Shown here piece after piece: positions 12,522 to 53,652 of a stretch of 64,000 nucleotides of DNA (positions within the stretch are counted from its first letter, which is position 1; each line of letters begins with the position of its first letter). A program made the position numbers and the translations under genes. Source of the stretch: Fimbriosthenelais zetlandica (Eukaryota). The notes below the pieces were generated by a model. It was not told the origin of the DNA. It did not search any database and was given only the letters and a program-made list of their open reading frames with translations. The stretch is taken from positions 36,084,001-36,148,000 of the forward strand of contig OZ365110.1 of the NCBI GenBank assembly GCA_977030845.1, written 5' to 3'.

Positions 12522-12662
12522 NNNNNNNNNNNNNNNNNNNNNNNNNNNNNNNNNNNNNNNNNNNNNNNNNNNNNNNNNNNNNNNNNNNNNNNNNNNNNNN
12601 NNNNNNNNNNNNNNNNNNNNNNNNNNNNNNNNNNNNNNNNNNNNNNNNNNNNNNNNNNNNNN
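12522..12662. other. Assembly gap (141 N)
   Basis: Run of N bases. Confidence 1.
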
Positions 12663-17645: not shown

Positions 17646-17926
17646 CTGAAGGGAAGAAAAAATTATAGTCATATTATATAGATAGTCATATTAAAAGATA
17701 TATACCTACTTAGAAACTGATTGTTTATAGATTAGACATTGCAACTATTGAAAGTTGTATTTCTGGCCTGTAGGATACGACTATAATAAGAGTATCCATG
17801 GTGAGAAAGTATTAAGAAACAAATTCTAGTCATGATTTATTGGAAAGTGTGCCTAGTGTGTTGTTTGATTCTGATGGAGCTTCCATTGACAATTTACATG
17901 CACAGAAACGTACTTACCAAGCTCAC

Positions 17927-18061
17927 AATCAAGATGATGAAGCCTAGCATAGCACTGAGTAAAATGTACCAATTCCTAACGATCCAGTTTTTCATGGCAC
18001 CAAGTCCTTCTGAACTGAAGAGTAACTTCTTCAGGTTTGCAAGAGGCCCTTCAGGATCCAC
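17927..18061 (-). CDS. ADAM10: ADAM10 exon E12 (VDPEGPLANLKKLLFS...NWYILLSAMLGFIILI; membrane-proximal region and most of the TM helix); alternative end at 17918
   Basis: VDPxGPLAxLKKL motif. Acceptor ctccttcag|GTG. Donors ATT|gtgagc (17927) or TTG|gtaagt (17918), both phase 0. Confidence 0.9.
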
Positions 18062-18272
18062 CTGAAGGAGTCATATTGTTAAGGGGTCAGCAAATATAGG
18101 CATTACTGTGTGGATGATTCAATGATATCTTTATTCTCCGTAGACTTTTATTTTGTTAAAACTAACTAATGATGAACCCTTTCCCTTCTCGACAGAGGAA
18201 TCTTTGACGCTCCAGGCGATTGGGTTTAGAGGAGGGAATTGTCTGTCATAGGGACGAGTGCTCGTCTATATT

Positions 18273-18462
18273 CTACGATCTACCTACGATCTGCTTGAAC
18301 ATGTTCAAAATAAGAACGTAGAGTTTTCTGATCCATGAAAAAAACGCAGAGCACACAGGAACATGATCGTAGGGTCATTCCACATACATTTTCAGTGGGT
18401 TCATTCCACATACTTTTTTTTGTAATTGTATCGTAAAGAAGAAGATTGTAGGGAGATCGTAG
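18273..18462. mobile_element. MITE-like element (190 bp) in intron E11-E12
   Basis: 20-bp inverted repeat ctacgatctacctacgatct / agattgtagggagatcgtag (18/20 match). Internal direct repeat tcattccacatac x2. Confidence 0.65.
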
Positions 18463-18655
18463 CTCAGTGGGTTCAGGCCCTGATCAAAATTGGATATTCT
18501 TGAAAGTACTGCGTGTTCTGAATTAATTGCCTTGTATTGGCCGTTACTTGACCAGATGATCAGTGGCTGGTAGGAATAATTGGTGGGGCATTAATTAGTT
18601 GTTGTGGTCAAGGTGCCTATATAGAGCGGGATCTATATGTTGATATGTAACTTAC

Positions 18656-18770
18656 CTCTCTACATTTATGTAATACATCACAGTATCCCTTATAATTATT
18701 GCAGGGCATCCCTGGTTTCGCCATCAAGTCTGGTACATCATAAGGCCGTATATTCCACACAAAAGACGAG
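18656..18770 (-). CDS. ADAM10: ADAM10 exon E11 (SSFVWNIRPYDVPDLMAKPGMPCNNYKGYCDVLHKCRE); not in the ORF track
   Basis: PGxPCNxYxGYCDVxxKCR motif by hand translation. Acceptor tcattactag|C, donor GAG|gtaagt. 115 nt, phase 2 to 0. Confidence 0.95.
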
Positions 18771-18842
18771 CTAGTAATGACAAGGACACTTCATTATAGA
18801 GCAAATAACTGATAAAACAGCTGCATAAGTTTGAAACCTGCG

Positions 18843-18933
18843 TCACACTGTCCCGATTTTTACAGCATTCGTGAGGGCCATCGACCATCGAATGGACATA
18901 CGATGGTCACACGACAAAATCGGGACAGTGTGA
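18843..18933. mobile_element. Miniature palindromic/MITE-like element (91 bp) in intron E10-E11
   Basis: Perfect 18-bp inverted repeat tcacactgtcccgatttt / aaaatcgggacagtgtga, plus an inner gaccatcg / cgatggtc pair. Confidence 0.7.
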
Positions 18934-19020
18934 GGTAGGCATTAGAAAATAGAGCGTAAATATTAGGCATTATCATATAAATTGAAAAAAATAGCTGATA
19001 ATAGTGTGTTGTGTACGTAC

Positions 19021-19154
19021 AGGCAGGGGTAGCCATCTCCAGGTTGCTTACAGCATAACTTACAGAGGTCAGGGTGATCAAAATCACTCGGATCATCTGG
19101 TTCACACTGGCATGATTCTAATTCATAAGCCATACAGATCGATCCAGTACATTC
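19021..19154 (-). CDS. ADAM10: ADAM10 exon E10 (Cys-rich, ECTGSICMAYELESCQC...LCKLCCKQPGDGYPCL)
   Basis: Kuz motif ECTGSICLAYGLESCQC. Acceptor tcatcgttgcag|GAA, donor CCT|gtacgt. 134 nt, phase 0 to 2. Confidence 0.95.
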
Positions 19155-19248
19155 CTGCAACGATGAGCAAAACAGATTATCTTTCTTTCTAGTAAAAAAA
19201 TAACTATGTTATTCTAGGTTTTGTCAGTTTAGAAGAAAGATGGCTGAC

Positions 19249-19330
19249 CCCTTGGTAGCAGACGTATCCGTCATCACAGAAGGATCTATCCCGCTTTTGT
19301 CTCGAGAACGGACAGGCTGGGCCTGTACCA
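19249..19330 (-). CDS. ADAM10: ADAM10 exon E9 (GTGPACPFSRQKRDRSFCDDGYVCYQG)
   Basis: Aligns to Kuz DGxxPxCP...CxxxxVCYxG. Begins after ...ttgtttAC|T, donor GGG|gtcagc. 82 nt, phase 2 to 0. Confidence 0.92.
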
Positions 19331-19582
19331 GTAAACAATGTTAAGGTAGTCAACATGATAGCTTTTCCTTCTAGAGATCTCAACATTTACTGTGCAATAT
19401 TTATTCTATACGATGTAATCTTTACTAATTTAAGAGTCAGATTGAAAAGAAAGAGTAGCTATATTGAAGGCTCAATTAAGATCCACTTTAAGATCAGATA
19501 TCGTGTTGAATTAATAATAATATTCGAACCCAGACTAATTTCCTCGTTATTTAAATGCAGGAAAGATTAAAAGAAAGGATAT
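19331..19582 (-). other. U12-type (minor spliceosome) AT-AC intron, 252 nt
   Basis: Minus strand begins ATATCCTTT. Branch-site-like ACCTTAAC at 19347-19340, about 10 nt before the terminal AC (19332-19331). No polypyrimidine tract. The junction GA|T restores the FCDG motif in frame. Confidence 0.92.
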
Positions 19583-19687
19583 TCGCAGAAGGCAGCACTC
19601 TTGCACGCAGTTGGTTCGCGGCAAGTTTTGTTCATCGCAGGACCGATAATCTGGCAGTAATCTGTGCAGCAAGGCCCTTCACTTGGA
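19583..19687 (-). CDS. ADAM10: ADAM10 exon E8 (disintegrin, PSEGPCCTDYCQIIGPAMNKTCREPTACKSAAFCD)
   Basis: CSPSxGPCC motif. Acceptor tctcttacag|T. Ends at TGCGA|atatccttt (U12 donor). 105 nt, phase 2 to 2. Confidence 0.94.
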
Positions 19688-19965
19688 CTGTAAGAGAATA
19701 ACCATGCAAAGTTGAAATTATTGATTCGAATGAAGCAATTATTGTTGTCTATTACTATAGTGAATAGGGACAACCAGTTACTGTAGATCTATTTTTCACT
19801 TATTCTCAAATGATCTATATTCGCTTTTGCCAACGCTTATGACAATGACGAAATAACTTTCTTCTTACAAGCTTTTGATTCATGTACACAGGAGATCCAA
19901 TTCTCAAGTGAGTGATCTTAATCAGGGGCTTGTTTCATATACAAAAAGATTTGCGATTCTAGTAC

Positions 19966-20125
19966 CTGCAAGATGCCGCCGGACGCCGGGTACACGGTCT
20001 TTCTCGGATGAGCTCGTTGGATGTTTGCGGGTAGCAGCATTGGTCAGCACATTCATCCTCCCAACCACAATCACACTCCTCTCCCGCCTCCACCACCTCA
20101 TTACCACATATTGATGTGGTAGGGG
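19966..20125 (-). CDS. ADAM10: ADAM10 exon E7 (disintegrin start, APTTSICGNEVVEAGEECDCGWEDECADQCCYP...CS)
   Basis: CGNxVVExGEECDCG motif. Acceptor ttttattctcag|CC, donor TGCAG|gtact. 160 nt, phase 1 to 2. Confidence 0.96.
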
Positions 20126-20599
20126 CTGAGAATAAAAAAGGTTAGACAGGTAATTAGTCCACATCTTCCTATAGGACTCCACTCTAAACATTAGTTACTA
20201 CCAGCAATCGGATAAAAGAAGTTGGGTGCGCTGCCTGTGTATTCTCTTGGGAAATTCCAGTCTTTACATATATAACCTTACTAGGCCTACTTGTTCACGA
20301 AGCCTACCGTACATTATAATAGGCATTTAAATTTACATAATTATTATTGAAATCAATTGTAATTGCAAATTAATTCAAAATTCATAAACCATTATCATAT
20401 TACAATGACAGATAATATCACCAATTTTTTTTAAAATCCTTTGCTGGATCATCATCTAGTTGAAATACCTTCTAAAAATTAATGACTCATTTTAAATTTA
20501 TTTCTTACTAATTGAATGTCAGACCCATGTACTGGCAACCACAAATTAAAGTCACATAACAGTGTGTAACCAGGATGTAGATTGTTATTAGTGGCTCAC

Positions 20600-20774
20600 C
20601 AATAAAGCATCCAGAGGAATGCCTGGCCTTGGCCTCCATCACTGTTGCCATGCTGGCTTTACTGCAGGCTGAAAATTTGTTGTTGTTTGGCTTGTCGCCG
20701 GAGGTCGCTCGAGCAAACATGATATAGTTCCCAGGTTCCCCGCCAGGCGAACATTCAGACGTTTCTGGATCATG
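20600..20774 (-). CDS. ADAM10: ADAM10 exon E6 (third Zn ligand and Met-turn, HDPETSECSPGGEPGNYIMFARATSGDKPNNNKFSACS...GCFI)
   Basis: ADAM10 signature GNYIMFARATSGDKxNNNKFS. Acceptor ttcttcctccag|CAT, donor ATTG|gtgagc. 175 nt, phase 0 to 1. Confidence 0.97.
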
Positions 20775-23700
20775 CTGGAGGAAGAAAAATGGGAAATTGC
20801 GTTATATGGGGAATATCAATCTGCAGGCTAATATTCATCTTTATTGCAGTGTTTATCGGAAAAGGCCCATATTTGTGAGGTGATCGCTAAAAGAGGGCCA
20901 GTCATATTCGGCCTGCATGGAAGAAACGGCCATTTCTACACAGGGCCCCATGACTAAGTGTATGGTGGGATTGACTGGGCAGGTTATTCATGAATGTTTA
21001 CGTGCGTTTCGACCCTTTCTCCCTGGAGCTCAATGAGGCTATACATTCCTATCAGAATTAATTTATAAATGTCTGCTTAGATGAGTCACAAGTGAAAAAG
21101 TAAGAAGCAAATAATTCAAGATTTATTATAGAAGGTTTGTTGTGCATATTGAAATCAGCCAGCTATCGTATTATCACGGCAGTTATTGTCGTTTGCACTT
21201 AAAAGTATTAACAAACTCAAATGCACAAAATGCTAAATTCGAAAAAAGCATGTGTTCCCTAGTTGCCTTTATACAGATACAGAACAGTGAGGATTGACGT
21301 CCCCCAGTCTCCTTTATACACTTTGTATAAGGCCGACTTAACCATTGAAAATAAAGCACTCGCATTTCGTTTTCGTGCATTATTGTCTCTTGCTGGGCTA
21401 GGAACCTGCCTTGCTAGGAACCCCAGACTGCAACCATGACAAATGGAGTTTAATGAGGTCATACATGAATTACTATCATAATTTGCAGTGGAAAGAAAGT
21501 AAAAAACAAAAATTACAAAATTAGAAATTACAAAAACATTTTTTCGTGGCCACAAGGCCTGATCCCCCACCATTAAAAACACGGATCCGTCTCTGAAACG
21601 CTAAAAATATATATATATCAATATTATGGTTATACTTGATCCTTAAATAGAAATTTAATTTCATTAGTTTGGGGTCGAGTCACCTGCTCCGTCCAACTCA
21701 GGCGTAGAGCATTGCATGATCACGACTGGGAGGCAGGAAAAAATGATGAAAGCATCAGCCAAGCCTCAGACATAATTGATCTCTCGACCAAAATCATTAT
21801 ATTCACTCGACAGACGTCTGGGCTTTTGATCCCAAGTATAGAAAGATGGGCACTGAGGGTTGATGGGAGAGTCAGGAAGCACTCAGATCTAAAGCAGGCA
21901 CCTATATATGCTTATTCTAGTCCCTCACTAACAGTCCCTTTTGAAGCATTTCCCTAGCTGCTTGTAGAAAGTGCCAATTGCATGACATTGCTAGGTCAAA
22001 TTGCAATTTCACATTTAATACTACAGAACATGCCTCTTCCCAGGGGTTTTCATCAGTAAAAAGAATATCAATTTCTATCTGGTATTTCACTGTCCTTGCT
22101 TTTGGCAAAAAAACATACCCCTTTGTCTTTGAAATTGGGAACATCACAGGAACTGTACCCATATTGGTTTTGAGTGCCCGGTCCGTGTATAGGGGAGGAG
22201 GGGTTTGGTGGATTGGGGGGGGGGTATAGAAGAGCAGTATCTGAGGACTAATGACTGGTTATCTCCCCGACTTTCTTTCTTTCTTCTATAATAATGCTGT
22301 ATAAACATCTTGAACAAAAAAGACCCAACCCCCACCCGACACAAAAGGTGGAACCTTTCTAGTACTTGGTTGTGCCAACTGTAGTTGTTTCTTAATGTAC
22401 CTCCAGACAGTCAGATAATGGGAGGCGTCAAGCTTCTAAGACATGGCATGTATAAATAGTGCTTAGCACCAGTCCTCAGGGGATCGGGGCGTCGCCTAAT
22501 AGAAGCAAAATGTTTTGAATTTGAAGATTGAAGTCACAAATGATTGATCGGGGACTAACGTTTGCATGTCTAAACGTGCAAAAGATAATGATAGATCGCA
22601 AATGATTGGTTCTCCGTGTCTGAAGAGAGAAAGGAACACCCTATCATAAAATCAATGAACATTTTTAGAAGACTGCAGCTGGGTTGATGTCAGGCGATCG
22701 ATAACATATAGTAAGTTTAGAATTGCGTATACAGTGTACCGCCAGCGGTGATTCAAAGAGAAGTTAAACGATAAACCTCCCAATGGATTATTCAAAAGCT
22801 AGCAAGCTGTTGTAGTATGCTTTAATCTAGCAATGACATGTTATTGAAAATGACTTTTAAGTACCCCGCCGAATCAATAGGCGACTGACATGGGTCATCT
22901 GGTACATCCCTGCTTCAAATCACTCAACAAAGAGGATGGATTAATAGAGCAGAATAGACAGGCTAATTGGATGTTTGGGTTCTTGTACCAAAGTGTAGGC
23001 TTAATAGTTAACACGAGGCTGGTTAGGGATTCCTTAATATTTAATAACAGGGATTACTCATACTCATATTGACTATTATTACTACATGAATTTCTCACTG
23101 TACAGAATATTTGTTTCAATTAATCAATATTAAATAATTGCAAGAACCCATGGAAGGCTTGTGAATGAAATATTATTTAATTTACAATTGATTTATATAG
23201 CTGAGAAATATATAGCCTAAATTAAATGTCCATCATGATAAAACCTTGTTGAGACCTTAGAACAGAATTGCTTTTAAAACATTTTAACAGTGATGGCATA
23301 TAGAAGGAGCAGAAGGTAAGAAGCAGGCTTAGTGAAGCAAGCCAGTGTAGCCATAGTGGGCGGCCCCAATATTGGCGCTGGTCTCAGGTTGTTGCTGGGT
23401 CCAGATGGATTGTGGCAGGATCCGTCCAGAGACAAAGGCGACTAATTACAGTGTTCAGGCAAGAAGCCACTGGGCCTGAGGATAGCTTGCTACTCTATGC
23501 ATACCAATGTTGGCTTCAGCAGGTGATGGGCTGCCTTGTGGCTCTCTGTCTAACTCAGAGCAACTCGGGTCTAGAGGCTTAACAATTGGCTCCCCGCCTA
23601 TCAACCTATAGATCTGTGCAGTGGGAAGCCAGGCCTAGGAGAAAAGTAATTATCTTTGCTAGGAGAGGGGCATACATTCTACCCAGACATTTTAGCTAGG

Positions 23701-26700
23701 TGATGTAAAGTCTAATTTACAAGAAAATCCAATGCTAAGCTTGATTTCGCTGGGAAATACTTATATGCCAGAGGTGCTGAAAAAGCCATATATCCAATCC
23801 TACAACCTGAAGAAAGCCATCAGTTTGTTTGAGATCTTATTGTTGCGTACTATTTTTTTATTATAGATAGCAAAGGGACATGTTGTGCATCCCTACAAGG
23901 GGGATCTTCTTGATGGAAGGCCTCGATATATATTTCAGTTTCATCTAAAAATACATATCTTGTCTCTGTCTTACAACATCTGTTTCCCATCTTCTGTAAT
24001 ATTGAACAATGTTAAGGTATTATAAAGTATAATTATCTTGTACGTGCCTGCTTCTGGTCTGTTAGGAAAAGATGCAAATCAAGGTTGTCGGTGTCTTTGG
24101 GAAAAGACACTCCACTTCATGAATATCAGAGATTCATGAATATGGATGCTTTCAAGAGACAAAGCATAAGAATATTTTGGTCCCAACATTATAGATACAT
24201 CATGGAACGATGGGTGCATCCTCATAATATCAATTATTCCACAGCCAGGCTTAATATTCCACATCATGGAGTGACTGCCTCCAAGGTCAAATTGCATCTG
24301 AATTCTGTCCCGGAAAATAGGTTTCATAAGCTGTGGCACCACAGAATTAAAGTATGATACTATATTGATATAATTATTATGTTCCTTGAAACCTTATTCT
24401 CAAGGTGTGGCAGGATGATAGGCCTAATCGTGCAAGTCACTACCCCTCCACACATGCTTGAGCAAGTAGACTATTTCAAAGACAAAGGAATGAAATTACC
24501 ATATCTATAGACTGTACATGTACACGCCATAGATGTACCACAAGGTTGCATCAGACATTTAAGACAGTGCACTCGATTCCATTTGTCCCAAAGCTTATTA
24601 TATTTAACAACATAAGGTTCCATGCAAATATGTCCAAGGAGTGGCATGATAGAACCCTTTAACCTATCCTACACAATTAGACTAACGAAATCACATATTA
24701 AAACAAATAAAGTTATGAATGGTCAGTCATACATAAGCAACTCGTGAATCAAATGATATCGGATGCACGGGAAATGTTTAACCGGGATGGGAGGTGCATT
24801 GGATAAAATAAAATGGCATGGTTCCCATTTCCTGCAGCAATGAGACCCTGCTGAAACGATTTTCTGATGGGTTAAAGCACCTGAACAATGAAATTCTATT
24901 AAGAATGCTCTTCTGTACCTAAATGGATTCAGTATTAATCCTCCTCGTTCCTAACTAATAGTCCATTTAAAATGGACCTTGATGGACTAATAGCTATTTA
25001 TAGGCACTCAATGGCATTATTCCACCAAGGCCATTATAACCTATACTATTTAGAAAATGAAAAATGGAGCAGTGGAGCATAAACTACCATAAGTATGATG
25101 AAGAGCAATGCTAACGTGAGAATCTTCTAGAGATGGGGAGTTTAAAACAAATCATCAATCTAGGAGAGAAGAAAGAAACAAGGAGCTGCAACTAGCGGAC
25201 TCACATTAGCTCATTAAGAAGGCATCTATCATAAATAATTGATTCTCCCTTTGCCAGGCTTCCTTTCCAAGCGTAAACAAGTAAAACATGTTCAGTAGGG
25301 ATAGTAATATCTTGTTAAAACTTTGCTAGCACTTTTTAATTGCCTGTCCAGCCATAAAATATCAGAGACGATATTGATTTTGCAATTAAGTTGAGCTGTG
25401 AAGCTTAATGAGGCATTATATATAATAAAGATAAGAAATGATATACATATGAACTACTCATAACCGCTCCCGCTTCTCGTTCTCCGACCTTCTCACTATC
25501 CCTTTTTTCTATGTCAAGTTTTCTTATGATGACCTAATTAATATATACGTCGGAGGGGGAAGTCTCAGAAGAAGGAATAAGCGCTACATTAAGCCCTATA
25601 CAGCTAACATTATATAGTTCATGAAATTATATATTATGTATTGGTCCCCTGGGTATATATTATAGTTGTCTTTAGAAATAATAGATGATGTGATATTAGT
25701 CATGCATAGAGGAGAGCTCATCAAATTTTCACGAACGAGTTGATGAGCTTCTTTAAGAAGATTTTCAATAGGTATACATCCCGTTATTACATGCATGTAC
25801 TTGGCTGTGGGGTGTTGTTATAATGACCACAATGCCTTTGAAAAACCTTCAGTTGTCCCCATTGTTTGTAGGCTTTTTTAAACGAACTGAATGTTGTATG
25901 TTCAATCCTCCTCCTGCTCCAGGGAGTTTCCAAGCCTCCTGCCATACTAATACAACGAGGCGAGATGAAGGCCACAGCCCGAGGGGACTTGAAATAGATA
26001 AATACAGGAGAAACAAATGGATTCCCCTGTGGAAAGAAAGGCATCTAATCCAGTGGGGCTCTTTATCTCAATTACTGACTACTCCATCATCTAATGAGCT
26101 ATCTCCAGCAGTTTAGGGGTAAGACTAGTTAGCCGAGCCATCGTTAAACTGCCTATGCTGGATCCTAAGTAATGAAGGGTCCCTTGCAAACGTTATGTCC
26201 CTGGCAATTGGACCGGTAGGAGCCTAAAATCAAATCAACTATAGGCTTAAAAAGCGTATCATGCAATTAGACAGCTACCATTGACTCAATAGATGTTAAG
26301 GGATCCATCAGCCACCTCTTAGGACTGGGCAACACACTGTGGGTAATGGACTTTACAGTGCATGAAATGTAACCAATTACAACTGTGATTAGCTGTGAGT
26401 AGCGATATTTGGATCCATGGCGATGCAATAAGAAATGATAGTTGAATTCCAGTTCATCTACCAAATTTCCCATGCGATATTCCTTCTAGTACTGCCTGCC
26501 TTGTCATAAGGTGCTCTTATTTGCTCATACTGGAAATGATTCTTCATTGGCAGGTCTTTCTGCAGGTTTCAAAAATAAAGTTCTATTCCCATAAATGGAG
26601 AATTTCTCATATTCCATTATTTCACTCGTGGAATGGAAGTGTATGCAATTGCATATTATTGCACTATTTCATAACACTGCACCTCATACACAATTTACTT

Positions 26701-28576
26701 TAAGCAATACTGAATGGGTATAGAATGAAGACCATTTTCATTAGTACAATCTGCCATCAGCAGGAAATATAAGCCCCTATCAGTATTGATGGTATCTGAA
26801 CACTTCTTAATGAACTGCTCCCCTTCCTCACCTCAGACCAAACCACTCCACCAATCAATCAGCAAATCTCCCATTTATATAGTAATCCCACGCTCAGCCT
26901 TTATAATATCTCTTTATGCCCTATGATCATAATTTTGATGATGGGAATTGCAACTCTGGAAATACTGCCCTGAAAAGCCATCTCATCGGGAAGCCAGTAT
27001 AACGTGGATTGTTTTTTGACAGAAAAAAAAACTCTTTGAGTGGGTATGGTTCTACAGACCAGCTCCATCTCCCCACTCGTCATATTGGTTCTGCAGTGGA
27101 GGGGGAGGGGAGTCGGGCACTTGCTCCACGACTCTTTTATCTTCATCCATGGAGTGGACAACTGAAAGCATTCGCTTAGGGCTATCATCAGTCCTTATTC
27201 CGCTCACTCCCTCCAGCTCTTTCCTCCTGCTCGTTTGTTCCAATATCTGTGGCCGGGAGAGCGTCTCGCTCCCCATAAATAACCATCTTCGCTTATTTCC
27301 AATGGCTAATGGGCATGTGGAAATCAGAAATATGGTGAAAAAATCCACCTCTCTAACAGTGTCTAATTTTACGGCCAAGTTACCTTCATTGGTCCCTGTT
27401 TCAGACGACCAGTTAGTCTTGACATGCATGCTTAATGAACTTATTCCAGGAGTTAAATGAGTAGGGTTACAGGTGAAAGTAAAAAAAAACATCTTAACCA
27501 TCTTTAATACAATTCTTGAAAGTTTCTCTTACTTACAAGTCTTCAATCTTCACATGTCTGTAGTACTAAAAAATACTCTGTTCCAAGCACATTGCATATC
27601 GACCACTGAGGCATTTTCCATTAATGCATTAGGAAAACCTACAGTATATATATAACAATGGACTCATTTAAAAAAAATAGATCTATGCATGTCTTAGAAT
27701 GAAATGTTTTTCTTTGAAGTGTTCAAAGATTCTAAAGCCGATTGAATTTTATGATTGTATGAAAATAAGTGGGTAAGCTCAAACATGAATAAGGGTGGGG
27801 TATTATGTATTACACTTTTAGAGACTTATTACCCATATATGTGAGCAGACACACCCAACCTTTCCCATTGTCTACAACATGAGAACAAATAGATATAGGG
27901 GGACTTTTTGAGCGCTACATAATATGTTGTCTTATCTTGTCTTTCATGCATTACCGGGATTGTAAGGTAAATGGATGGGTGGAATAGTTGAAGGCATCCA
28001 CCCACGTGTATTTTTTCCCCTCCAGACCTACCCTTTCAGACTGCCAGGTCCTCTCAAATTTCGGAACAAACGAGATAATTTAGCATGATTACCGAGCAGC
28101 AGTCGTCAGCCCGGAGACGAAATATCATCTCAGTAAACTAATTAGGAGCCTGCTCCGATAGCAGATATCTGGTAAAACCAGAAACAGAAGGCAAAATATG
28201 CGAGAAAGAAATAATATAAATACGCCTCAGGAATAACAGACATCTCATCTGCGACTGTGGCTGTAGACCCTGAACTCAGCAGAATTGCACAGGTCTATCA
28301 TTTCAGCCTATTTACTACAATGTTTACCCCTGGAATGGGGTTTGCCCAAGGCACCTCATGATATATAATATACCTAAATACATTTCTGGAGAAAAATAAC
28401 TATGTAATAGCCCATAGTCGTATCATAAACTAATATAATATAACGGCGTAGACAACCATTGTTTGTAAAGACATTTCCGCAATTTGCCACTACATACTAA
28501 AGATTTTATGAAATTTATAATTATTCCGAGACTTGCTTAATATTCTTTAGTATCATGATAATTATATTATACATAC

Positions 28577-28705
28577 CTGTGAGCCCATATTATGTCCTAT
28601 TTCATGGGCCATCGTTACATGCGAGACCGTTGAAGGCACATCCTTCCCGTAGTTTAATATTGTCACGATTCCAGAATTCAGACTTTTGAGGCTTCCGCGA
28701 AACTG
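28577..28705 (-). CDS. ADAM10: ADAM10 exon E5 (Zn-binding site, [43 protein letters not shown]); not in the ORF track
   Basis: Hand translation gives HEIGH (HExxH). Acceptor ctctatag|CAG, donor CAG|gtatgt. 129 nt, phase 0 to 0. Confidence 0.97.
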
Positions 28706-29400
28706 CTATAGAGATAAATGCATACATAACTGACAATTAACAGTGCTAAAAATGTTAGAAAGTGCTGGGTAGCTGTTGGATATTTAAATAGCAAAAGTTA
28801 AAGAGACTGTTAAATAGCCTAGGTCTGTATGGTCCAAAGGCAATACTATTAAATAAATCGGGGCCTGTGTCATAAGGAAGAAGGATTGCATTTGCCTATG
28901 CTGAGCTGATGGGCTAATGCAGCAGATCTTGTACTGAAACAGGTCGCTAATGTAAAATCATGAAACATAATCTGGGCGTGCCCAAATACAATTTTGGGTT
29001 ACTACAGAAACTGCAAGCCAATACAGAAAATCATTTCAAGCTATGGGGATTATGAGTACTTGTATACATGTTATTCCTCTAGAAAGCAAAGCTCAGCTGG
29101 GGTCAAGTCTATAGTCGAACGTCGCACATTATTCAATCCCCACATTTTGGAGGCAATTAACTGACTGTGACATCATTTTTCTTGGACACTTTTAACTGAG
29201 GTGTGTAGCACCAAGTATATCTCATCAGTCTTAAATCTTCTACGTGTTGGGCCCCTTCTAAGTAGCAAAGGAAATACTGATGCCGCTGTTTTAAACCTTT
29301 CATAAGTGGGAGAGGAAATACTGATTGATCATAATGTCGACACTAAGATGGCCGAGTAATGAGCTCAAGCCTCATCAATAATGATTGCTGGTCAACCTAC

Positions 29401-29660
29401 TCCATTCTTCTCGCAGACCCCACCAGCGTTCTGGAGATCACCAGTCCATGCCAAGCCGAGGGTCCCACCTTCAAAGTCTCGGTAGGTGAACATGTAAGCC
29501 AAACAAAAAGCATCAAAATTGTCCTCAGAAAATAGCTCCAGGAAAGTCTCCACTCCATAGCTGCCTGGGAATTTGTATCCGGAGGCTGAACTATCCGTAT
29601 GGACTTTGATGCGCTTGATGATAAAGTTGATGCTGTCTGGAAGGCTGTCTCCATCAAAAT
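29401..29660 (-). CDS. ADAM10: ADAM10 exon E4 (metalloprotease, ...FCLAYMFTYRDFEGGTLGLAWTGDLQNAGGVCEKNG)
   Basis: Near-identical to Kuzbanian CLAYxFTYRDFExGTLGLAWTGDLKNAGGVCEKNG. Acceptor tctttcag|AT, donor GGA|gtaggt. 260 nt, phase 1 to 0. Confidence 0.97.
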
Positions 29661-31675
29661 CTGAAAGAAAGAAAAAATGTTTGTTCAAAAGTTCTTCAAA
29701 GGAAGGAAAGTCTCATTTCTTGGAAGCATCTTTGATAAGCTGACCTTCGAACAGTATACCTACATGTATATGTTATAATTGTTTCTGAAAATGTTTTTAA
29801 AATTGCATATAATATATGTATATGACTGATAGGACAGGTGAAGTGAAATGTAATAATTATTATTTTGAAAGATTGTATTATAGGATTTGGCGATTCACCA
29901 TCGCCAAATAGATTCTGTTTTGGTGATGTGATTTGCCAATGCCAAATAGCATTTGTCTTAATTGTGTTGAGCAGAAATTTTCGCGCAGTGGGTTTCTGCC
30001 AGGCACGCAAATTATGCTCCCTAAAAGTGCAAGCATTTTTTGCAAGGAGAATCTGTTCAGCAACCCGCGCATTGTTGCTTAGTGTACAATAGTGTAAAAT
30101 AAACTAACCTTATTCTGTAAGAAATATTTAGGTATTATAACATTTCAAAACAAAGGCCAAGTCCTCAATTCAATAAAATTTTATATTTTATCAAAGAGTG
30201 CCAAGTCATCTATATGTACATTAACCCCTGGTCACATTGGGATAAGCAGTAAAGGAGGCATACAAGAGCTAATCCTGCCTGCTTCTGGCCAGGATCAAAC
30301 TTTTATGTCAGTCCCACACAGCCACAATAGTATAAATGTGCAGGTGGGCCCAGCTCTGTCCTCCTTTAACAGCCCCCTTTTCATACCATTTCCTCCCCAG
30401 TCTGGATGGTGACTATGGTAAATTAGAGATGTCTAGCGCAAGCTCACTGTAACACGGCCTTCCTTTATCCGCCCGTTGGGAAGGTCATGAAGTGTCCAGA
30501 ATTGACCTTTATTTCCTCGCCAGATGCCTCTGTGACCAAGTTAGTGATGCCGGGCAAGAAGTTGGGACTATCCTTCATGCTGCTATCTCTGGGCCAGCAA
30601 TGACAGTAGAAGCGGGGGAAGCGACATGGGTGGGTATGTCACGACTGATAAGGCAGACAAGATGTCAATTTACGACGTGATCCTCTCCAGGCAGTGGGAC
30701 TAAGCTGGTTGTTTTTAAGAGTCAACGAGAGCGAGGTCACCCACCATTGTTTGAATCCAGCACTGATGTTTGCTTCGTGCATTCATATTGCAATTAACTT
30801 GGTGTCTATTTGTATGACATCTTAATTTATATGGGCCTCAACATGCCAACTGCATAAAGCAGGCTTTCTTATCTATAGATGTATTTATACACCAGGAATC
30901 CTATACTTTTAGGCCATTGTCCTGCTTTCATTGCTTGTTTCACTGCCTTTCAGACCAGAATGAAATGTACTTCAAAGTGAAACACTGCTCTGCGTTATTG
31001 AAATCCTCTTTATGAAACCTCACAATGCTTGTCAAATATAAATTTCTATGACGGACATGTAGACCTGTCGATCGGGGTGTTCCAGAAAGTGTTGTGATAA
31101 GATATTATTGTAGAAAGAACTGAGCTGAAAAACGCACATTCTTCGAGGAAAATCTTTCAACCTGCTCCAGATATTCAACTCTAATAAAGTGATGACGCCT
31201 AGAATCTCAAATACAAACCATTTCAGATAGATTCTTCACTGAGAATAACAATTATACACATGCAATGAGAGGGAGGAGTTGCGTCTACCGACATTCGCCT
31301 GTCCAAACTATTGACAGAACTTCCATGGAAAAGAACAATAATTTCTGAAATGCGTCTCGTTCGGTATTGAAAATTACAAAGTCATTTCTTCAATGAGTGA
31401 TATAGACACTGAAGCCAAATGGAAATCGAAAGTTGTTAAAGTAATTCAAAGTTCATCCATCATGGAGCAGTGGCTTTTATCTTGGAAACTTTAGTGGTAT
31501 GTATTAAACCAAATTATCAAAGAGAGCATCATTTGAGACTTTCATAATTGCCTATGATCACTGGGACTTGTCAACATGCTGAAAAATATGACTTGCGTTG
31601 AAACCATATGAACCAGGCAGATGGTCGGACAGCATTGGAAATGTTAGACTCTATTAATTCAACTCAGGCCAATAA

Positions 31676-31717
31676 AGTGCCGATGAAGTCTAAGTCTCGG
31701 CTGAAACGCTCGGCATT
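31676..31717 (+). ncRNA. Degenerate minimal hammerhead-ribozyme-like motif (probably an inactive Penelope-like relic)
   Basis: agtgcc-GATGA-agtc-taagtctc-ggct-GAAA-cgc-TC-ggcatt: stem I and stem II pairings present. The core departs from CUGANGA and from the GAAACGCGUC pattern. Confidence 0.35.
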
Positions 31718-32383
31718 AAAAGCAATATACGTAACACCAACAACCAGCGCTCACTTAGTTTACATTGCTCTGAAATTGCAATAGCCCTGAAGCCAGGGAA
31801 GGTCTTTTTGATAATGAAAATGTATGTCGGGTGGAAATTTAAATTAATAACTATTGTCAAGTGAATACAGAAGATGAGAGTGTTATCTTGACTTGATAAT
31901 GAAGGCCTGGCACTGGCCTAGACTTGGTATTGCTATTCGCCTGATTGAACCCGGTCCATGGCATGTGGGAATATAGGCCAGACAGTCGATACAGTTGCCG
32001 CGGGCCTTTCATGAGCTACAATGGGCCCATCAATGCATGCCTCGTTGGCCTGCCAATAATATTTGATTAGCTTTCATCGACGACCTCAACCAGGTATATT
32101 CGATGGGAAGTAAAGACAGAAAACTCATGTAAAGAATGCTAGTTTTCTGCATGTAGTTACCTGCCTCGGTCGAACCATGTGTTCCTAAGTCAGGACTGTT
32201 ATATTATTCAGATTATGTTGGGATGGGTAAAACACTTAGCCTTTCATTGTATAGTGGCTTTGCGGTAGAATAAAAGGAAGAGACACAAAACAATGCAGTC
32301 TCAACGGGACAAAAGCGGTTTATATGCAGACCGTGTAAATTTGAAAAGGCCATGCAAAAGGCAGACACAGAGGGGATTTAAGC

Positions 32384-32386
<3 letters not shown>

Positions 32387-32418
<32 letters not shown>
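32387..32418. repeat. (TA)16 microsatellite
   Basis: Direct reading. Confidence 0.95.
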
Positions 32419-32420
<2 letters not shown>

Positions 32421-33955
32421 AGGCGAGATCGAGAGGTTTGGTGAAAAAGAAGAAAGAATATGAGCACTAGGAGAAAATAGAGCACATAAATTATATAGAA
32501 AGGTGCAATAGGTTGGATCAAGTTGCGTCTGCAACAACAGCAGCAATATATATAGCCGAGGCAAACACGACACAACATTGAGAGTTTTATAATATAAAAT
32601 GTATCAGGTGTTGGTCCTTCTACGGCTATCATGGACCTTAGTATACCACCCACGACCAAAGATCACCATGGCTAACGCTAATATGAACAGGTGCGTCTTC
32701 CCCTCCATATAGAGACTTGATTAAGTTTTTAATAGATGCCAGATCAGCAGGGCAAGGGGCCATCTCCCTGAGATCACATGCTGCTCAGCCATTTCCATGC
32801 CAGTGTTAACAAGACTGGACCAATCATGGCTCCAATAGCCGCCCCCCATATATACTGCCATGAAAAGCTTCATTGAGCCCTGGATGTGCCTCCCATCAAT
32901 TGCCTATTGCCTGGATGGAGCTATTTAATTATTCATCCCATGAGGCGGGGTCATACATTACATGAAACAAAATAATCAGAGGAGAACATACACAACTGGC
33001 TTAATTCGGCAACGGCAGAAGATTGATAACATTAAAGATTGTTTTGTATGGTAGCGCTGATCCATCAAGAATGAGTACGGTACTCGTACCATTCACGGCC
33101 ACACCTTACATAGAGAATTGATTGGGATAAAGCCTCTCTGACCCTCCTCTGGGAATTGATTTTGGTGACAGTGCCCTTTTTTGGACTATCACCAAGATCA
33201 ATTAATAATCTATCTTATGTAAACATGGAGCTGGCACCGCCGAGGCTTTAAAGAGCTATGAACGTCACCGACTTTCATTGATTGCCATACTGCCAACCAG
33301 TCTCTAAATATCTTTGAATTATTGAGGTTGGCTTGATGGAGGTCGGTGGGAGTGAATTGGACGTGCCCGGAAATATCTATACTGACTGTGGGTTGTTGAA
33401 ATATTATACCATATGTTAAAGGCGAGTCATGAAATGGAGTAGCTACTTTCTAATAGCCACAATAGGCAAACATTTCCTTCAGTACCGCACTCTTGATACT
33501 AATATTGCAAGCAATTCACTATGATAAAATATTGATATCACCGATCACCTCGGCTTATTTGAAATGCTTCTGATTTCCAAGTTAAAAGGGAACAATAGTA
33601 GGTATAGTTATTGCTGTTCATACTGGTGATTGTGGGATGGGGTCAAGTGATACTGAAAGGAAAATATTTTTTCTATCCATCGATATTCTGAAGGATTGCC
33701 TGCCTCGATCATCGTAGATACGTTCAGAGAGTGGACATAATTGAAGGAATATATTCAAAGGAGTATTTTTACAAATGGCCGAAACCCCTCACAATGAGTG
33801 TAATCAAAGCTACGAAATTATGGGAAATAACATGTATTTTAAGACTTGGAATCTATTTGATAACAATGATTAGCAAATATTAAGTCAACGGACTTATGTA
33901 TAAGACATTTTCATAAAAGGTCCCAGAGCTTTTAGAAGAGATGTAAGATACTTAC

Positions 33956-34540
33956 CTATAGCGCTGTATATATCGTTGACACCTTGCACGTGTTGTGTAA
34001 GTTGCTCTATCACAGTCTCGGTATTTTTATGAAACTTTCTGTAAAACAAGTGGTCTGCCTGCACGAACAAAGTACAGGTTGTTTTACTGGGATCTATGGC
34101 ACGTTTATGTCTCCGATGGAGATGCTGTTCACTTCGATGACCAGCTTGACCATCTTTCACTAGCTGCTCACCATCTCCAAATGCTAATTTATGTTTGGAA
34201 AAATCCAGAGAATGATGATCATCGGAATTAATCCATGTATATGTAGTGTTAGTGTGCTCGGTCCTTTGTTTAAGTAATTCACGGTTATATTTGTCTTGTT
34301 TATTAAGGGCTGGTTGCATTTGTCTTATCTTATGATGGAGTCTGTCCGCAGTACAGAGTGAAGCATTGAGGTGGGGCATGTGAATATCAGAGTGGCGGTA
34401 GATGACGGAATGGAAGGCCTGGGGGCTGGGGAAGTGGTGGAAGGACCTTTCCACCCTATATTTCTCTCCAGATGTCTCAATACTCCCTTCAAACACCCCC
34501 GTCGATGTGATCACACCGTGAATGCGAGAGTCTCGGTCGT
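33956..34540 (-). CDS. ADAM10: ADAM10 exon E3 (rest of prodomain, cysteine switch, furin site RHKR, start of metalloprotease domain)
   Basis: 585-nt open stretch within ORF 33894..34634: G.FEGSI, FHSVIY, CTAD, RRHKR|AIDPSKTTCTLFVQADHLFY. Acceptor ttttcag|AC, donor ATAG|gtaagt. Phase 1 to 1. Confidence 0.96.
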
Positions 34541-47046: not shown

Positions 47047-49194
47047 TGGAAAGTATGGAAAATTCTAGAAAATGACGAGTGAAACCCGTGGACGAAGCGT
47101 TGGGTTCTTTAAGGCACTACGTCCATACATCAGAACAAAACCATGGATAATTCATTGATATTAATATCTCTCCCAGCATCCCTTCTGAAAGTTACCAATC
47201 CTAATCCTTTCTGTTCACTGCTCAAAACAGGCATGAGTGAAAGAATAATGGAAAGGAAAGTAGGGCACATCGATATAAGATAAGAGTGTTGTCTCCCCCC
47301 ATTGAGCGCTTCCTCCGCCTACTCATCCTCCTTCAAGGAGTAGACAGGGACCACAGAAGGTTGATATAATAAGCCAGTTCCCCTGCAAAGGGTTAATTTA
47401 TTGATGTAATGTAGAAGCCATGTTCACTGGAGAGATGTAGCTTTGTCTTTTTTATCATGAACGTCCAAGAGTAGCGTGTCTGTCAGATCCAGAGCGAAGG
47501 AAAAAGAGAGAAAGGAGAGAAGAGAAGGGGATCCTTGGTAAAACCAAGCATTATGTTCTCAACCGATTTATAGCACACCCTCTATTCCCCATTGGATTGA
47601 TCTGCCAAGCCTTGCTGGACGTCCCATTGTGTAGGCCGAGCAAGACGTTCTGCTTTAGAAAAGGCATCTCCCATAACAGGGGCCATGCCTACCACGGTCA
47701 GGTCCCAGTCTCCGCCTAATCAGTTTACCTGTAACAGAGGCCAGAATTGGGAGCGATTGGTGGCCAACAGCCTGCCAAGCCCTCTCTATGGAATCTGCTG
47801 ATCGGATCGGGATAAGTCTAATGACCCATTGACAACAATCAAAATAAATGATGGCCGCCCTTAGCATGATAAAATTGCATAGCCGGAGAAATGGAATTAG
47901 ACATCGGTTCCTAACCGGACATCCCCCCATATATATGTACGAAATACTGCAGATGGGTGGAAATAGGCAGATCAGGAGACAAATGGAGAATTTGGGAAGC
48001 TTAGGAACTGGGGTGTACGGTATAATAGGAAAAATGTGTAATTGACCAAGCTCTGATATGTGATATGGCAATTAATGCCTTTAGTCTGCCAGAGCAAGGA
48101 GAGAGATCAGCGTTAACAAGGATGGAACCTGAAGCCCTCCAGTGTATGGGCTGTGATGTTCCCACGAGTAGAGAATGCTTGTTAACATTATCCTGCTAAT
48201 TGACTTTCCATTATGGGTTCTCCTGTCAAGACAGACAGACAGAAAATAGAGGGCAGAGGCAGAACGATAAGAACAGAGAGAGAGAGAGAAGGCTTTTATT
48301 AAAGTGAACAGAAGCCTCTTCAATACCACAATGCTTATGTCCTACCGGACACTCAGCTAAGTGAAGTAAGATTGATGTCACCCTAGTCTTTCCTAGCGAG
48401 GCTGTGTTGAAAGAGATCTCATGTTACTGATTCCTAGACAATTGGCCCATCCACAATCCAGCTTCATCTCAACCCACTTCTCATAAATCTAGCCCGGGAG
48501 ATTAACTGATACACATTACGGATATTTATGTCCCCAGGTTAATTTCCATTAGCCAATAGAGTCTAATATAATACTGTGCACGCTCAAGCCGTCTTGACCT
48601 TTATAAGATGCTGGTCTACATATTGTACCTATCAGGTTTATCTTCTTATGGGAGAATTACCATAATACAGGATGTATCCAGCTGTTAGTTAGGCCTATCA
48701 CTGTGCCTCACATAATGACTGGTTCACCCATAGGTTAATGTCCTGGACTATAACCGATAGGTAACCGACCTTTTAACAAATTGAATAATTTGCATCAATC
48801 CATTGTTAAAATGTGCTCCACAAAGAGGCATTTGTTAGGTGGGTTCGAGGTGATGGATATGCCCAGTATCTGTTGGAACCCCAATCAACTGAATTAAAAT
48901 TTGGTATTTCCACTTAGATTAAACCCAGGCGCTTTTTACACCAAAAATGAACTATATATTAACCCATAGATTTGGATAATGTAGAATAAGTGTGCTGAAA
49001 CAGCTAGGCCCAAAAGCTTAACCACATTTTAGACACTGAATTGTACTCAAATACGGGGAGACTGAAGAGAAATTGAAGTATCTTGCTACATGCAATGTTT
49101 TTCATCAGTATCCAGAAATTTGTAAAAACATTCTTGACATGTTAACAGGACCAGGCTTTTACTTAAACTACAAAAACAAGTCTGGTTCACCTAC

Positions 49195-49313
49195 CTGTGA
49201 GTTGCCCAATGTAGGCGCGTGATGTATCGTAATACATTTCTCCCTGACTAGTTTCCACCACCAAATTTGGATGGAAAACACCGAGGTCCCGACGCATCCG
49301 CAGATTAAATGTT
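49195..49313 (-). CDS. ADAM10: ADAM10 exon E2 (prodomain, RTFNLRMRRDLGVFHPNLVVETSQGEMYYDTSRAYIGQLTG)
   Basis: Matches ADAM10 FNLRMKRD...YDTSHIYTG. Acceptor atttcag|A, donor ACAG|gtaggt. 119 nt, phase 2 to 1. Confidence 0.95.
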
Positions 49314-51269
49314 CTGAAATGACACAAGGTCATATTTCCATTATAAGTGAGGGCAGGATCAAATTCTAAGCACCTATACGACATGATTATTAACTGTCAC
49401 TATATCCGTTTATAATGTTGTGAGTCATATCGATTTCTAGTCTCATATTTTCATATAAAGAGGGGTGTCTTTTTGGTTTTGGTTTATTTATAAACATGTT
49501 AATTGCTTTTCTGATACATAAATATTGTGAGTATTCACAGTTTCGGCTGTATATTAACATTAAAATGGCATTCCATATTTCTGGGAATCAAGAAAAATGA
49601 CTTCGGTATTAACTACGCAGCACCCAAATGACAGTCTCGTCACACTAATATTGAGCCTTGAAACAAAGACTGGGTGTCATGTGAAGCTGGGAGAAACACC
49701 TGAAATTCCTCAAATGACACGAGACATTAACTGAGTTAATGGCATTTGGCTGGGAGATACGGAATTACATGCATAGAATTCCACAGGAACACTAGAATCA
49801 TCCGTGGGGGAACGAGATATAAATGGAATTATAATGAGGAGCTCCTGAAGCGTATACTTTATACGGGCAATCAGAATATGATGCTCTGAAGCAACTTTAA
49901 TAGAAAAAAGAACATCATCAAGACACTGATAAAACTATGAGCTTAAACTTCACTTTTACTGATCACCTTCGCACAGTAGTTCTTATAAATCATTATTCCA
50001 TCTTTAATAATCAGTTGGCTATTTTTTAGGTCACTAATGGAGCAGGCTTTCATGTGAATCAGGCCCCTGACTCTTGTTTCATAACGGACTTGCGCTACAT
50101 TAGACAATATGAGTTAATGTAGCACATCTTTCTTCTTAACATCGGTCTTCTGTTTTGCTACACGGCCTCTCTTGCCTCTCTCAGAGTCTGAGATGTAGAA
50201 GCTCTTACATCACCTCTCCCTGTTACTATAACTAGGATAAGTCTTTCTTCTTGCAGCGTCTAGCTTAGAAACAGAACCTTTCTACCGTAGCTAGACTAAA
50301 GCGTCATGATGTTCAGCCTATGGCAGCTTGCTCGTCTGACGGTTTGATGTATTCGATCCTTTCTCCCCCTGAACAAGGTCAAAAATAGACTTCCAATGAT
50401 AGGATCAGTCGGTACGACCAACCCTCCCTTCACTCCAGCCATTTTCCATGTCAGTAGCGATCATCATCATATTTTTTGTCGGATGTTGAATGGACATGTA
50501 TTTGGACTCGGCTGGTGGTTGCACGGTTATAGCAGTCTGGATTTTTGATTGATGTTGGAATGTTAGTGATGTGGATGAGGACGAGAGAAGATGATGAAGA
50601 TGGGGGAGAGAGAGGGTATAGAAGGGGATTATGATTAAAAGCGGGTGAATTCTGGCTTGTGGTACGGCTTGATTGATGGGCCTCGTGGCCTGATTAGAAG
50701 CAGCGTGGATTAACTAATAGGTGGATCAGTGGATGGGGGATGATAGGAATGTAAAGATATACAAATCAAATAATTAGCCAAAGTGTTAACGGATCATGAA
50801 GCAAACTGACCACAGATAAACAGTGTGGGGACAGACGTGATAGAATTAGTCATTTCATAAATGACGCAGCACAGCCATGATGAACTGAACGATTACCACA
50901 AATCCTATTCAATTGCTCCTAATTAAGCTACACCTTATTATAAATCTATATGACACAATGATAAATCATTATGGCTATATATAAGCTTTGGGTTTTCCAG
51001 ACCCTTCAAACTGTTTGTTCAATCATTTTGGATATAGAAATAGAGATCAGACGGAAAAGGGAATACTCCCAATGCATCAGTCAGAAAGATATTGCGCTAT
51101 TTAATTTAATAGCGTTAATAGAGTTATTATCAGAGTGGCAATTCTTATGTATTTCCATTAAACAGTTGAAACAGTCCATAAGATGATGATACATGGACAC
51201 GTTTATTGGTAGAGGAATATCAGGAGGAGGATATTGGTAAAGGAGCATGTAGTGTAAGAGGGAACTCAC

Positions 51270-51402
51270 CTGCCGTGGGCTTCAAAGCTGAGGTGAAGGT
51301 GGGTGTCAGGTGAGCGTTTAGCCCTGTGATGATCCAGGTGAAGACGGTCATGGTCGTAATACACTGGTTCATAATGGCGAATATAGTCACTTAAAGGTGT
51401 GC
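51270..51402 (-). CDS. ADAM10: ADAM10/Kuzbanian coding exon E1 (first visible; start of prodomain, [45 protein letters not shown])
   Basis: Recognisable ADAM10 prodomain start (YIRHYE...HxRAKR...F.AHGR). Acceptor ctttgttgtag|GC, donor GGCAG|gtgagt. 133 nt, phase 1 to 2. Confidence 0.93.
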
Positions 51403-51505
51403 CTACAACAAAGTAAAGACAGTCAGATAAGAATTCTACAACAGACAAAGTAAAGAGAGTCGTATAAGGAGTCTATAACAAAGTAAAGAGAGTCGGATAA
51501 GAATT
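51403..51505 (-). repeat. Three tandem 33-37 bp copies of the 3' splice-site region upstream of E1
   Basis: Minus-strand units: aattcttatccgactctctttactttgttatag / actccttatacgactctctttactttgtctgttgtag / aattcttatctgactgtctttactttgttgtag. Confidence 0.9.
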
Positions 51506-52480: not shown

Positions 52481-53180
52481 GGTACATGCATACATGGTTC
52501 ATAGCATGAGAAAATATATTCCAAAACTCTTTGTCAGATTCCATGCTAAGTACCTGTACATGATTTCTCTGTGTAGTTCGATCCGTTTTAACCTTACTTG
52601 CTATGGTATACATGTACAATGTATATGCATATTCACTGGGTAAGGCTTCTCCGTCAGTTGGGTATATTGAATAACAGTGACATGCCATAGCTCAGGAGAA
52701 AGTTGCTATCATCAGTGTAATATTGCTCTGGGATCTATTTTATGCTTGCACCAACCGCCTCAAGCTTGCAGAGTATGGGCTTAGGGCCATACATCAAGCT
52801 GGGTCTATTCTGGCTGCTCCTACCAGACATTTGGAGCGTGGAAGCAGGAAAGGTGGGCACCACACGCAACTCACCAATGGTATCAAGCATCACTTTCTCA
52901 TTTACTCCTGGCAAAAATAACGAGATAATACTAGACTACATTGCTTAAATCTAAAGTTCTGCCGGGAACGTTGACATGACTTTATTTACCTTTAAGTTGT
53001 TGCTTTTAACATAATATTTGATTAATGTGACTTTCAGGTATTGCGTACCTCCCTGTATTTTCACGATAGATTTTTTGAAGATTAGATTAGATGGGAAAAG
53101 GTTGAGTTCTACATGCTCAATGCAAAAGGTGAACAGCCATTAAAATGTTTTATTTGCGTCGCAAAGATCATCCAAAACCT

Positions 53181-53652
53181 GGATTTGACGCACTGAGGTC
53201 TTTAGGTATCCAATGCTCGGATTTGAGGCACCAAGCATTGAGGACTTGAGACATCCAATGCTTGGATTTGAGGCACCAAGCATTGAGAACTTGAGATTTC
53301 CAATGCTTGGGGACATGAGGCATCCAATGTTTGTATCCATTTGAGGCACGAAAACATTGAGGACTTGATACATCCAATTCTTGGATTTGAGGCACCAAGC
53401 ATTGAGGACTTGAGGCATCCAATGCTTGGATATGAGGCACCAAACACTGAGGACTTAGGCATCCAATGCTTGGATTTGAGGCAACAAGGATTGAGGACAT
53501 GAGGCATCCAATGTTTGGATCCATTTGAGGCACGAAAACATTGAGGACTTGATACATCCAATTCTTGGATTTGAGGCACGAAACTTTGAGGACTTGAGAC
53601 ATCCAATGCTTGGATTTGAGGCACCAAGCATTGAGGACTTAAGGCATCCAAT
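53181..53652. repeat. Minisatellite, unit about 45 bp (ggatttgaggcaccaagcattgaggacttgagacatccaatgctt), about 10 copies
   Basis: Directly visible tandem repeat. It explains the overlapping 15-aa-periodic ORFs at 53140-53806. Confidence 0.95.

Follow-up and report, generated by a model that had tools for sequence, protein, structure and literature searches.

The window, as we call the whole 64-kb stretch of Fimbriosthenelais zetlandica DNA that was analysed, holds an ADAM10-like gene on its minus strand, and the disintegrin domain of this gene is interrupted by a short segment that begins with AT and ends with AC. This locus raises the question of how the two flanking exons are joined, and whether the way in which they are joined controls how much of the protease is made. 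From the genomic evidence described below, it is very likely that the segment is a genuine U12-dependent AT-AC intron that is ancestral and most likely constitutively removed. The original prediction was of such an intron within the disintegrin domain of a gene of the ADAM10 family, and this is supported by the splice signals, by their position and by their conservation. The coordinates and letters that it gave, including the join of 19583 to 19330, the motifs and the stop after FCEYPFF, were all correct. The features of the locus and of the related genes are collected in Table 1.

Table 1. Features of the ADAM10-like locus in the window and the corresponding introns of related genes; a slash marks an exon-intron boundary.
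Feature	Position	Strand	Description
ADAM10-like gene, mapped part	17918..34540	minus	ten exons, 629 aa, stop-free
Two upstream prodomain exons of the same gene	49190..51472	minus	open frames 51269-51472 and 49190-49396
Upstream disintegrin exon	19583..19687	minus	105 nt; encodes (S)PSEGPCCTDYCQIIGPAMNKTCREPTACKSAAFC and GA of the split codon
AT-AC intron	19331..19582	minus	252 nt, phase 2; disintegrin domain of the ADAM10-like gene
Intron terminus AT	19582-19581	minus	matched pair with AC
Intron terminus AC	19332-19331	minus	matched pair with AT
U12-type 5' splice site ATATCCTTT	19574..19582	minus	9/9 to RTATCCTTT, from the first intron base
Branch-site motif ACCTTAAC	19340..19347	minus	7/8 to TCCTTAAC, one mismatch
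Stop TAA upon intron retention	19567..19569	minus	in frame; read-through ...FCEYPFF, then stop, after five codons
Downstream disintegrin exon	19249..19330	minus	82 nt; T of the split Asp codon, then GTGPACPFSRQKRDRSFCDDGYVCYQG
Stegodyphus dumicola (spider)			TGTGA/ATATCCTTTTG ... TTTCTTTAACCAACTTTTAC/TGG; 2927 nt; annotated protein uses the junction
Paralvinella palmiformis (annelid, GCA_025642065.1)			TGCAA/ATATCCTTTTT ... TCCTTAACTCTGCCCAC/TGG; 369 nt
Lottia gigantea (limpet)			TGTGA/ATATCCTTATT ... TTCTTAACCATTAGCAC/TAG; 322 nt
Lingula (brachiopod)			TGCAA/ATATCCTTTTT ... GCCTTAACGTGCCTTCAC/TGG; 472 nt
Glandiceps (hemichordate)			TGTGA/ATATCCTTTAC ... TTCCTTGACCAATGTTAC/TGG; 1783 nt
Own paralogue	C10 near 3.35 Mb		AT-AC intron, 752 nt; branch motif GCCTTATC
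Own paralogue	C19 near 1.79 Mb		AT-AC intron, 124 nt; branch motif ACCTTAAC
ADAM17-like gene (C22:2481000-2490999)	donor at locus position 8095	minus	GCGA/GTATCCTTT
ADAM17-like gene (C29:12180200-12190199)	donor at locus position 8570	minus	GCGA/GTATCCTTT

U12-type AT-AC introns are defined by their 5' splice site and by a TCCTTAAC-like branch site that lies ~10 nt from the 3' end (PMC3584512), and the window intron shares both of these features. It also has the same termini, the non-zero phase, the deep conservation and the four minor snRNAs that go with this class; what differs is the host gene family. The likely branch A is at 19341 and the last intron base, 19331, follows 10 nt later, a spacing that falls at the short edge of the usual U12 range, the optimum distance between the branch site and the 3' splice site being 11-13 nt (PMC3584512). 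The branch site is separated from the terminal AC by attgttt alone, a purine-rich stretch is located upstream of the branch site, and a distinct polypyrimidine tract, as judged by eye, is absent before the 3' splice site. Minor introns tend to avoid phase 0, and the phase 2 of the window intron fits this known bias (PMC10639083). The assignment to the U12 type was made by consensus matching together with conservation.

The reading frame is restored exactly when this intron is removed. On the minus strand, the upstream exon is preceded immediately by the AG acceptor ttacag, encodes SPSEGPCCTDYCQIIGPAMNKTCREPTACKSAAFC and terminates in ...GCC TTC TGC GA at 19583, and the downstream exon opens with T GGT ACA GGC at 19330. 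Joining 19583 to 19330 results in ...CKSAAFC-D-GTGPACPFSRQKRDRSFCDDGYVCYQG with an Asp codon that is split GA/T, and the resulting FC-D-GTGPACP junction aligns to homologues without a gap. The spider protein, for example, reads YC-D-GQGPLCP at this point and is gapless to the window model.

The motifs by themselves carry little information in a sequence of this length. RTATCCTTT is found twice in the window where 2.1 occurrences are expected and CCTTAAC is found eight times where 7.1 are expected, and loosely defined pairs of donor and branch site no more than 5 kb apart number four compared to a mean of 6.7 in simulated sequence. Motif counting was rejected as evidence, as the bare motifs show no excess over chance in 64 kb. 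What is beyond chance is that both motifs are located at the exact bases where ADAM10 homology breaks and resumes, and in frame. The weight of the U12 assignment is thus carried by the position of the motifs at the homology breakpoints and by their recurrence in seven other ADAM10-family genes. Two further matches in the window were also inspected. A second perfect ATATCCTTT is present on the minus strand at 58667-58675 with no recognisable coding sequence adjoining it; this copy looks like chance, about two such sites being expected per window. A CCTTAAC at 18078-18084 (window 18062-18084, minus strand) lies 14 nt before an AG acceptor and was considered as a U12 branch site, but the donor of this intron is GTAAGT and it was set aside as a chance look-alike within an ordinary U2-type GT-AG intron.

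The chance-level frequency of the motifs would also be expected if they were coincidental and the major spliceosome used some GT-AG or GC-AG pair close by to join the exons. Every in-frame GT/GC-AG pair around the junction was enumerated, and several in-frame combinations do exist. None of these pairs restores the FC-x-GxxxxCP that is aligned with the homologues, which upholds the claim of the original prediction that no GT-AG pair gives the conserved junction. All of the alternative donors are poor. The GT donors GTCCTG, GTGCAA and GTGCTG are weak and each deletes conserved cysteines. The closest option combines the GC donor GCGAAT at 19586 with an AG acceptor from which the exon resumes at 19322, giving AAFC-PACP; every cysteine is kept by this pair, but DGTG is deleted and the Cys-x6-Cys spacing is shortened. 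This spacing is constant in 244 family members, in which the junction residue is D, N, S or K, so that each alternative either deletes conserved residues or alters conserved cysteine spacing. In the seven other genes, which come from five phyla, the ATATCCTT donor and the terminal AC are furthermore conserved, and they are held while the length of the intron runs from 124 to 2927 nt. A major-spliceosome junction is, on these grounds, highly improbable.

Whether the U12-type intron is used also depends on the state of the gene that carries it. The exon model was guided by the spider protein XP_035212925.1 (Stegodyphus dumicola) and every boundary was inspected. The 629-aa model takes in the zinc site, the disintegrin and cysteine-rich regions and the beginning of the membrane span. 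Several ADAM10-like copies are found in this genome, one of them intronless, and it could be argued that the window locus is a decaying pseudogene copy in which the apparent intron is never processed. The spliced model speaks against decay as it is free of stops, its zinc-binding motif HExxHxxGxxHD is intact and its disintegrin and cysteine-rich cysteine pattern is complete. The eight other introns of the model are all clean GT-AG introns with pyrimidine-rich 3' ends, leaving 19331-19582 as the only non-canonical one; its two neighbours among the GT-AG introns occupy 19688-19965 and 19155-19248. Its position in the family argues the same way: a maximum-likelihood tree built from 38 rows puts the window protein inside ADAM10 as the sister of the annelid Paralvinella protein (support 100/99, 60% identity), and its end branch of 0.51, against a median of 0.39, is not flagged as long. 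A pseudogene is accordingly a very remote prospect. The intronless copy is an ADAM10-like open frame of 795 aa without an internal stop (C11:19266017-19267033, minus strand); its identity to ADAM10 proteins is ~30-32% and its branch in the tree is very long. It looks like a divergent retrocopy that stayed open.

Two observations concern other parts of the window. On the minus strand at 53143-53744, upstream of the 51.4-kb exon, all three frames are open for ~600 bases, with ORFs of 104-180 aa, and the sequence repeats a unit such as NPSIGCLKSSMLGAS; this region has the appearance of tandemly repeated DNA. At 12522-12662 the window has a run of 141 N, which is an assembly gap or masked sequence.

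The gene belongs to the ADAM10 family and has the same protein family and domain order as vertebrate ADAM10 and fly kuzbanian. Against solved structures, the catalytic exon matches ADAM10 best (70.6 bits, compared to 35 bits for ADAM17), and the nearest proteins carry the names ADAM10 or ADAM10 endopeptidase. Within the family, the window gene is nearer to annelid, mollusc and arthropod ADAM10-like proteins than to vertebrate ADAM10. The pair that it forms with Paralvinella joins an arthropod ADAM10-like clade with weaker support (87/91), with the mollusc rows unresolved, and the proteins of the spider, Drosophila and abalone (Haliotis) have a higher summed tblastn identity to the window gene than to its paralogues. 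The genome contains at least three further ADAM10-like genes, two of which show a closer relationship to deuterostome ADAM10 than does the window gene. Two intron-bearing paralogues group with hemichordate and vertebrate ADAM10 (95/100, for rows that are 19-27% filled), and by summed tblastn the identity of fish ADAM10 is 52% to the C10 paralogue and 42% to the window gene. Judged by these groupings, the animal is probably an annelid or closely related to annelids. The original prediction had referred to the gene as "the Notch-activating sheddase"; given these additional copies, its membership in the ADAM10 family stands, but its identity with that particular sheddase is uncertain.

A check of orthologues for a shared intron had been proposed, and it was determined that the intron is widely shared. 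A phase-2 AT-AC intron is present at the same position in seven other ADAM10-family genes (Table 1). It follows the first two bases of a D, N or S codon, and in all of these genes that codon directly follows a conserved Cys. The intron is shared by protostomes, by a deuterostome and by the genome's own paralogues, and we conclude from this distribution of sequences that it is ancestral. In Daphnia pulex, in the fly Musca vetustissima and in the teleost Cyprinodon variegatus the intron is absent and the two exons are fused into one, whereas the window gene carries the intron. The fused exon in Cyprinodon variegatus is 189 nt, compared to exons of 105 and 82 nt in the window. Exact deletion is the pattern that has been described for the loss of U12 introns (PMC3584512), and the fused exons in Daphnia, the fly and the teleost indicate that the intron was lost in this way, by exon fusion. 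The proposed history is of an ancestral intron that would have stayed at one codon position and that several lineages would have lost when the two exons fused exactly.

The machinery that would be required to remove the intron is encoded in the genome. Two U12 genes (124 and 123 bits) were identified in the 447-Mb assembly together with U6atac (103 bits), U11 (103 bits) and U4atac (94 bits), all above the Rfam cut-offs, and the recognition sequences of these minor snRNAs are intact. The U12 snRNA contains GUAAGGAAAAU (GUAAGG), which can form six pairs with the CCUUA-C of the branch site with one A bulged. The 5' end of U11, UAAAAGGG, and the AAAGGA box of U6atac, GAAAGGAGA, are both complementary to the UCCUUU of the 5' splice site. 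In the mechanism that we infer, U11, and later U6atac, would pair with ATATCCTTT, and U12 would pair with ACCTTAAC at a distance of 10 nt from the 3' end. With these contacts made, 19583 would be joined to 19330 by the minor spliceosome, a join that is required for the full-length membrane protease. An Rfam scan of the whole window gave no match, and no snoRNA or the like is hosted in the intron.

A related intron was found in the ADAM17-like genes. The genome has two of these, C22 near 2.49 Mb and C29 near 12.19 Mb, both on the minus strand. The C22 gene matches ADAM17 best among solved structures (55 bits, compared to 27 bits for ADAM10), and the C29 gene was placed with ADAM17 from just two features, the catalytic motif HEFGHNWG..HDPDT and a disintegrin exon of ADAM17-like sequence. 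The exon ends in ...CEGNGFC-GA in the C22 gene and in ...CEENSHC-GA in the C29 gene, and both are then followed by GTATCCTTT. The coding sequence resumes after TTCCTGAACcaagtaaAG/TGG (274 nt) as D-GTKLDCP and after TCTCCTTACattttctgacAG/TGG (624 nt) as D-GVSTSCP, respectively. These introns begin with GTATCCTTT, have TTCCTGAAC or TCCTTAC as the branch site and end in AG, and thus represent the U12-type GT-AG subtype at the homologous FC-D/G codon position. The presence of a GT-AG U12-type intron at the homologous ADAM17 site suggests that the intron probably predates the split of ADAM10 and ADAM17. A single U12 intron older than the split, with a later switch of subtype, is the simplest reading of these bilaterian genes and we regard it as probable. 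Subtype switching is a known but rare event for U12 introns (PMC3584512), and the difference between AT-AC in the ADAM10-like genes and GT-AG in the ADAM17-like genes resembles the switching in paralogues that is cited there. Independent gain at the same site could also give this arrangement.

The remaining question is whether the intron regulates the gene. According to this alternative, slow or conditional minor splicing limits the amount of sheddase, and transcripts that retain the intron are either degraded or translated to a truncated soluble protease. If the intron were retained, translation would reach a stop within the disintegrin domain after five codons. U12 introns are removed ~2-5 times more slowly and a general rate-limiting role has been proposed for them (PMC3584512), and both the ADAM10-like and the ADAM17-like genes have retained an intron of this type over a very long time. 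Several points weigh against such a gate. The intron was cleanly lost in Daphnia, the fly and the teleost and the ADAM10 genes are intact in all three lineages, so the intron is dispensable. A pan-eukaryotic survey argues that much of the evolution of minor introns can be accounted for by neutral processes (PMC10639083). A protein that is cut within the disintegrin domain would presumably lose part of its disulphide partners; the truncated "membrane-less protease" of the original prediction is only what the reading frame would allow. A regulatory gate is therefore considered unlikely, and slightly more doubtful still is the proposal that many invertebrates have retained the intron in the two sheddase lineages because it makes the amount of shedding protease depend on the activity of the minor spliceosome. 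Were the latter to be true, vertebrates, flies and Daphnia would have escaped a minor-spliceosome coupling of Notch-ligand and growth-factor shedding by losing the intron. Constitutive removal, as for other conserved U12 introns, is the most likely fate of the window intron.

The intron also has consequences for annotation, and the expectation that gene predictors would mis-model the junction is borne out by two public models. The Paralvinella protein KAK2144321.1 jumps from ...CTRRPGAIC to KQCTRSVC..., so that both exons flanking the intron are missing. The JGI Lottia model LOTGIDRAFT_235956 is missing the upstream exon and uses an AG that is three bases before the true AC. The omitted disintegrin exons are present and intact in the two genomes (Paralvinella locus 6812-7400 and Lottia locus 8886-9440), and the omissions are apparently due to the AT-AC junction being disallowed. 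The NCBI models for the spider, Lingula and Glandiceps use the AT-AC junction. The ADAM10 models of at least two invertebrates are thus without part of the disintegrin domain as a result of the missed junction, and pipelines that bar AT-AC introns will truncate or mis-join the ADAM10-like gene.

In a full-text search of the literature, no link between U12, minor or AT-AC introns and ADAM10, ADAM17 or kuzbanian was encountered, and ADAM10 or kuz is unmentioned in the minor-intron papers and supplements that were checked. Genome-wide catalogues of minor introns probably already contain annotated instances. The intron adds a new host family to a known intron type and would not surprise a specialist. 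With it, the ADAM10/ADAM17 sheddase family can be counted among the hosts of an ancient minor intron, and provides a clean example of the AT-AC and GT-AG U12 subtypes in paralogues. In animals that have kept the intron, defects in minor splicing would be expected to affect ADAM10- and ADAM17-type proteases.
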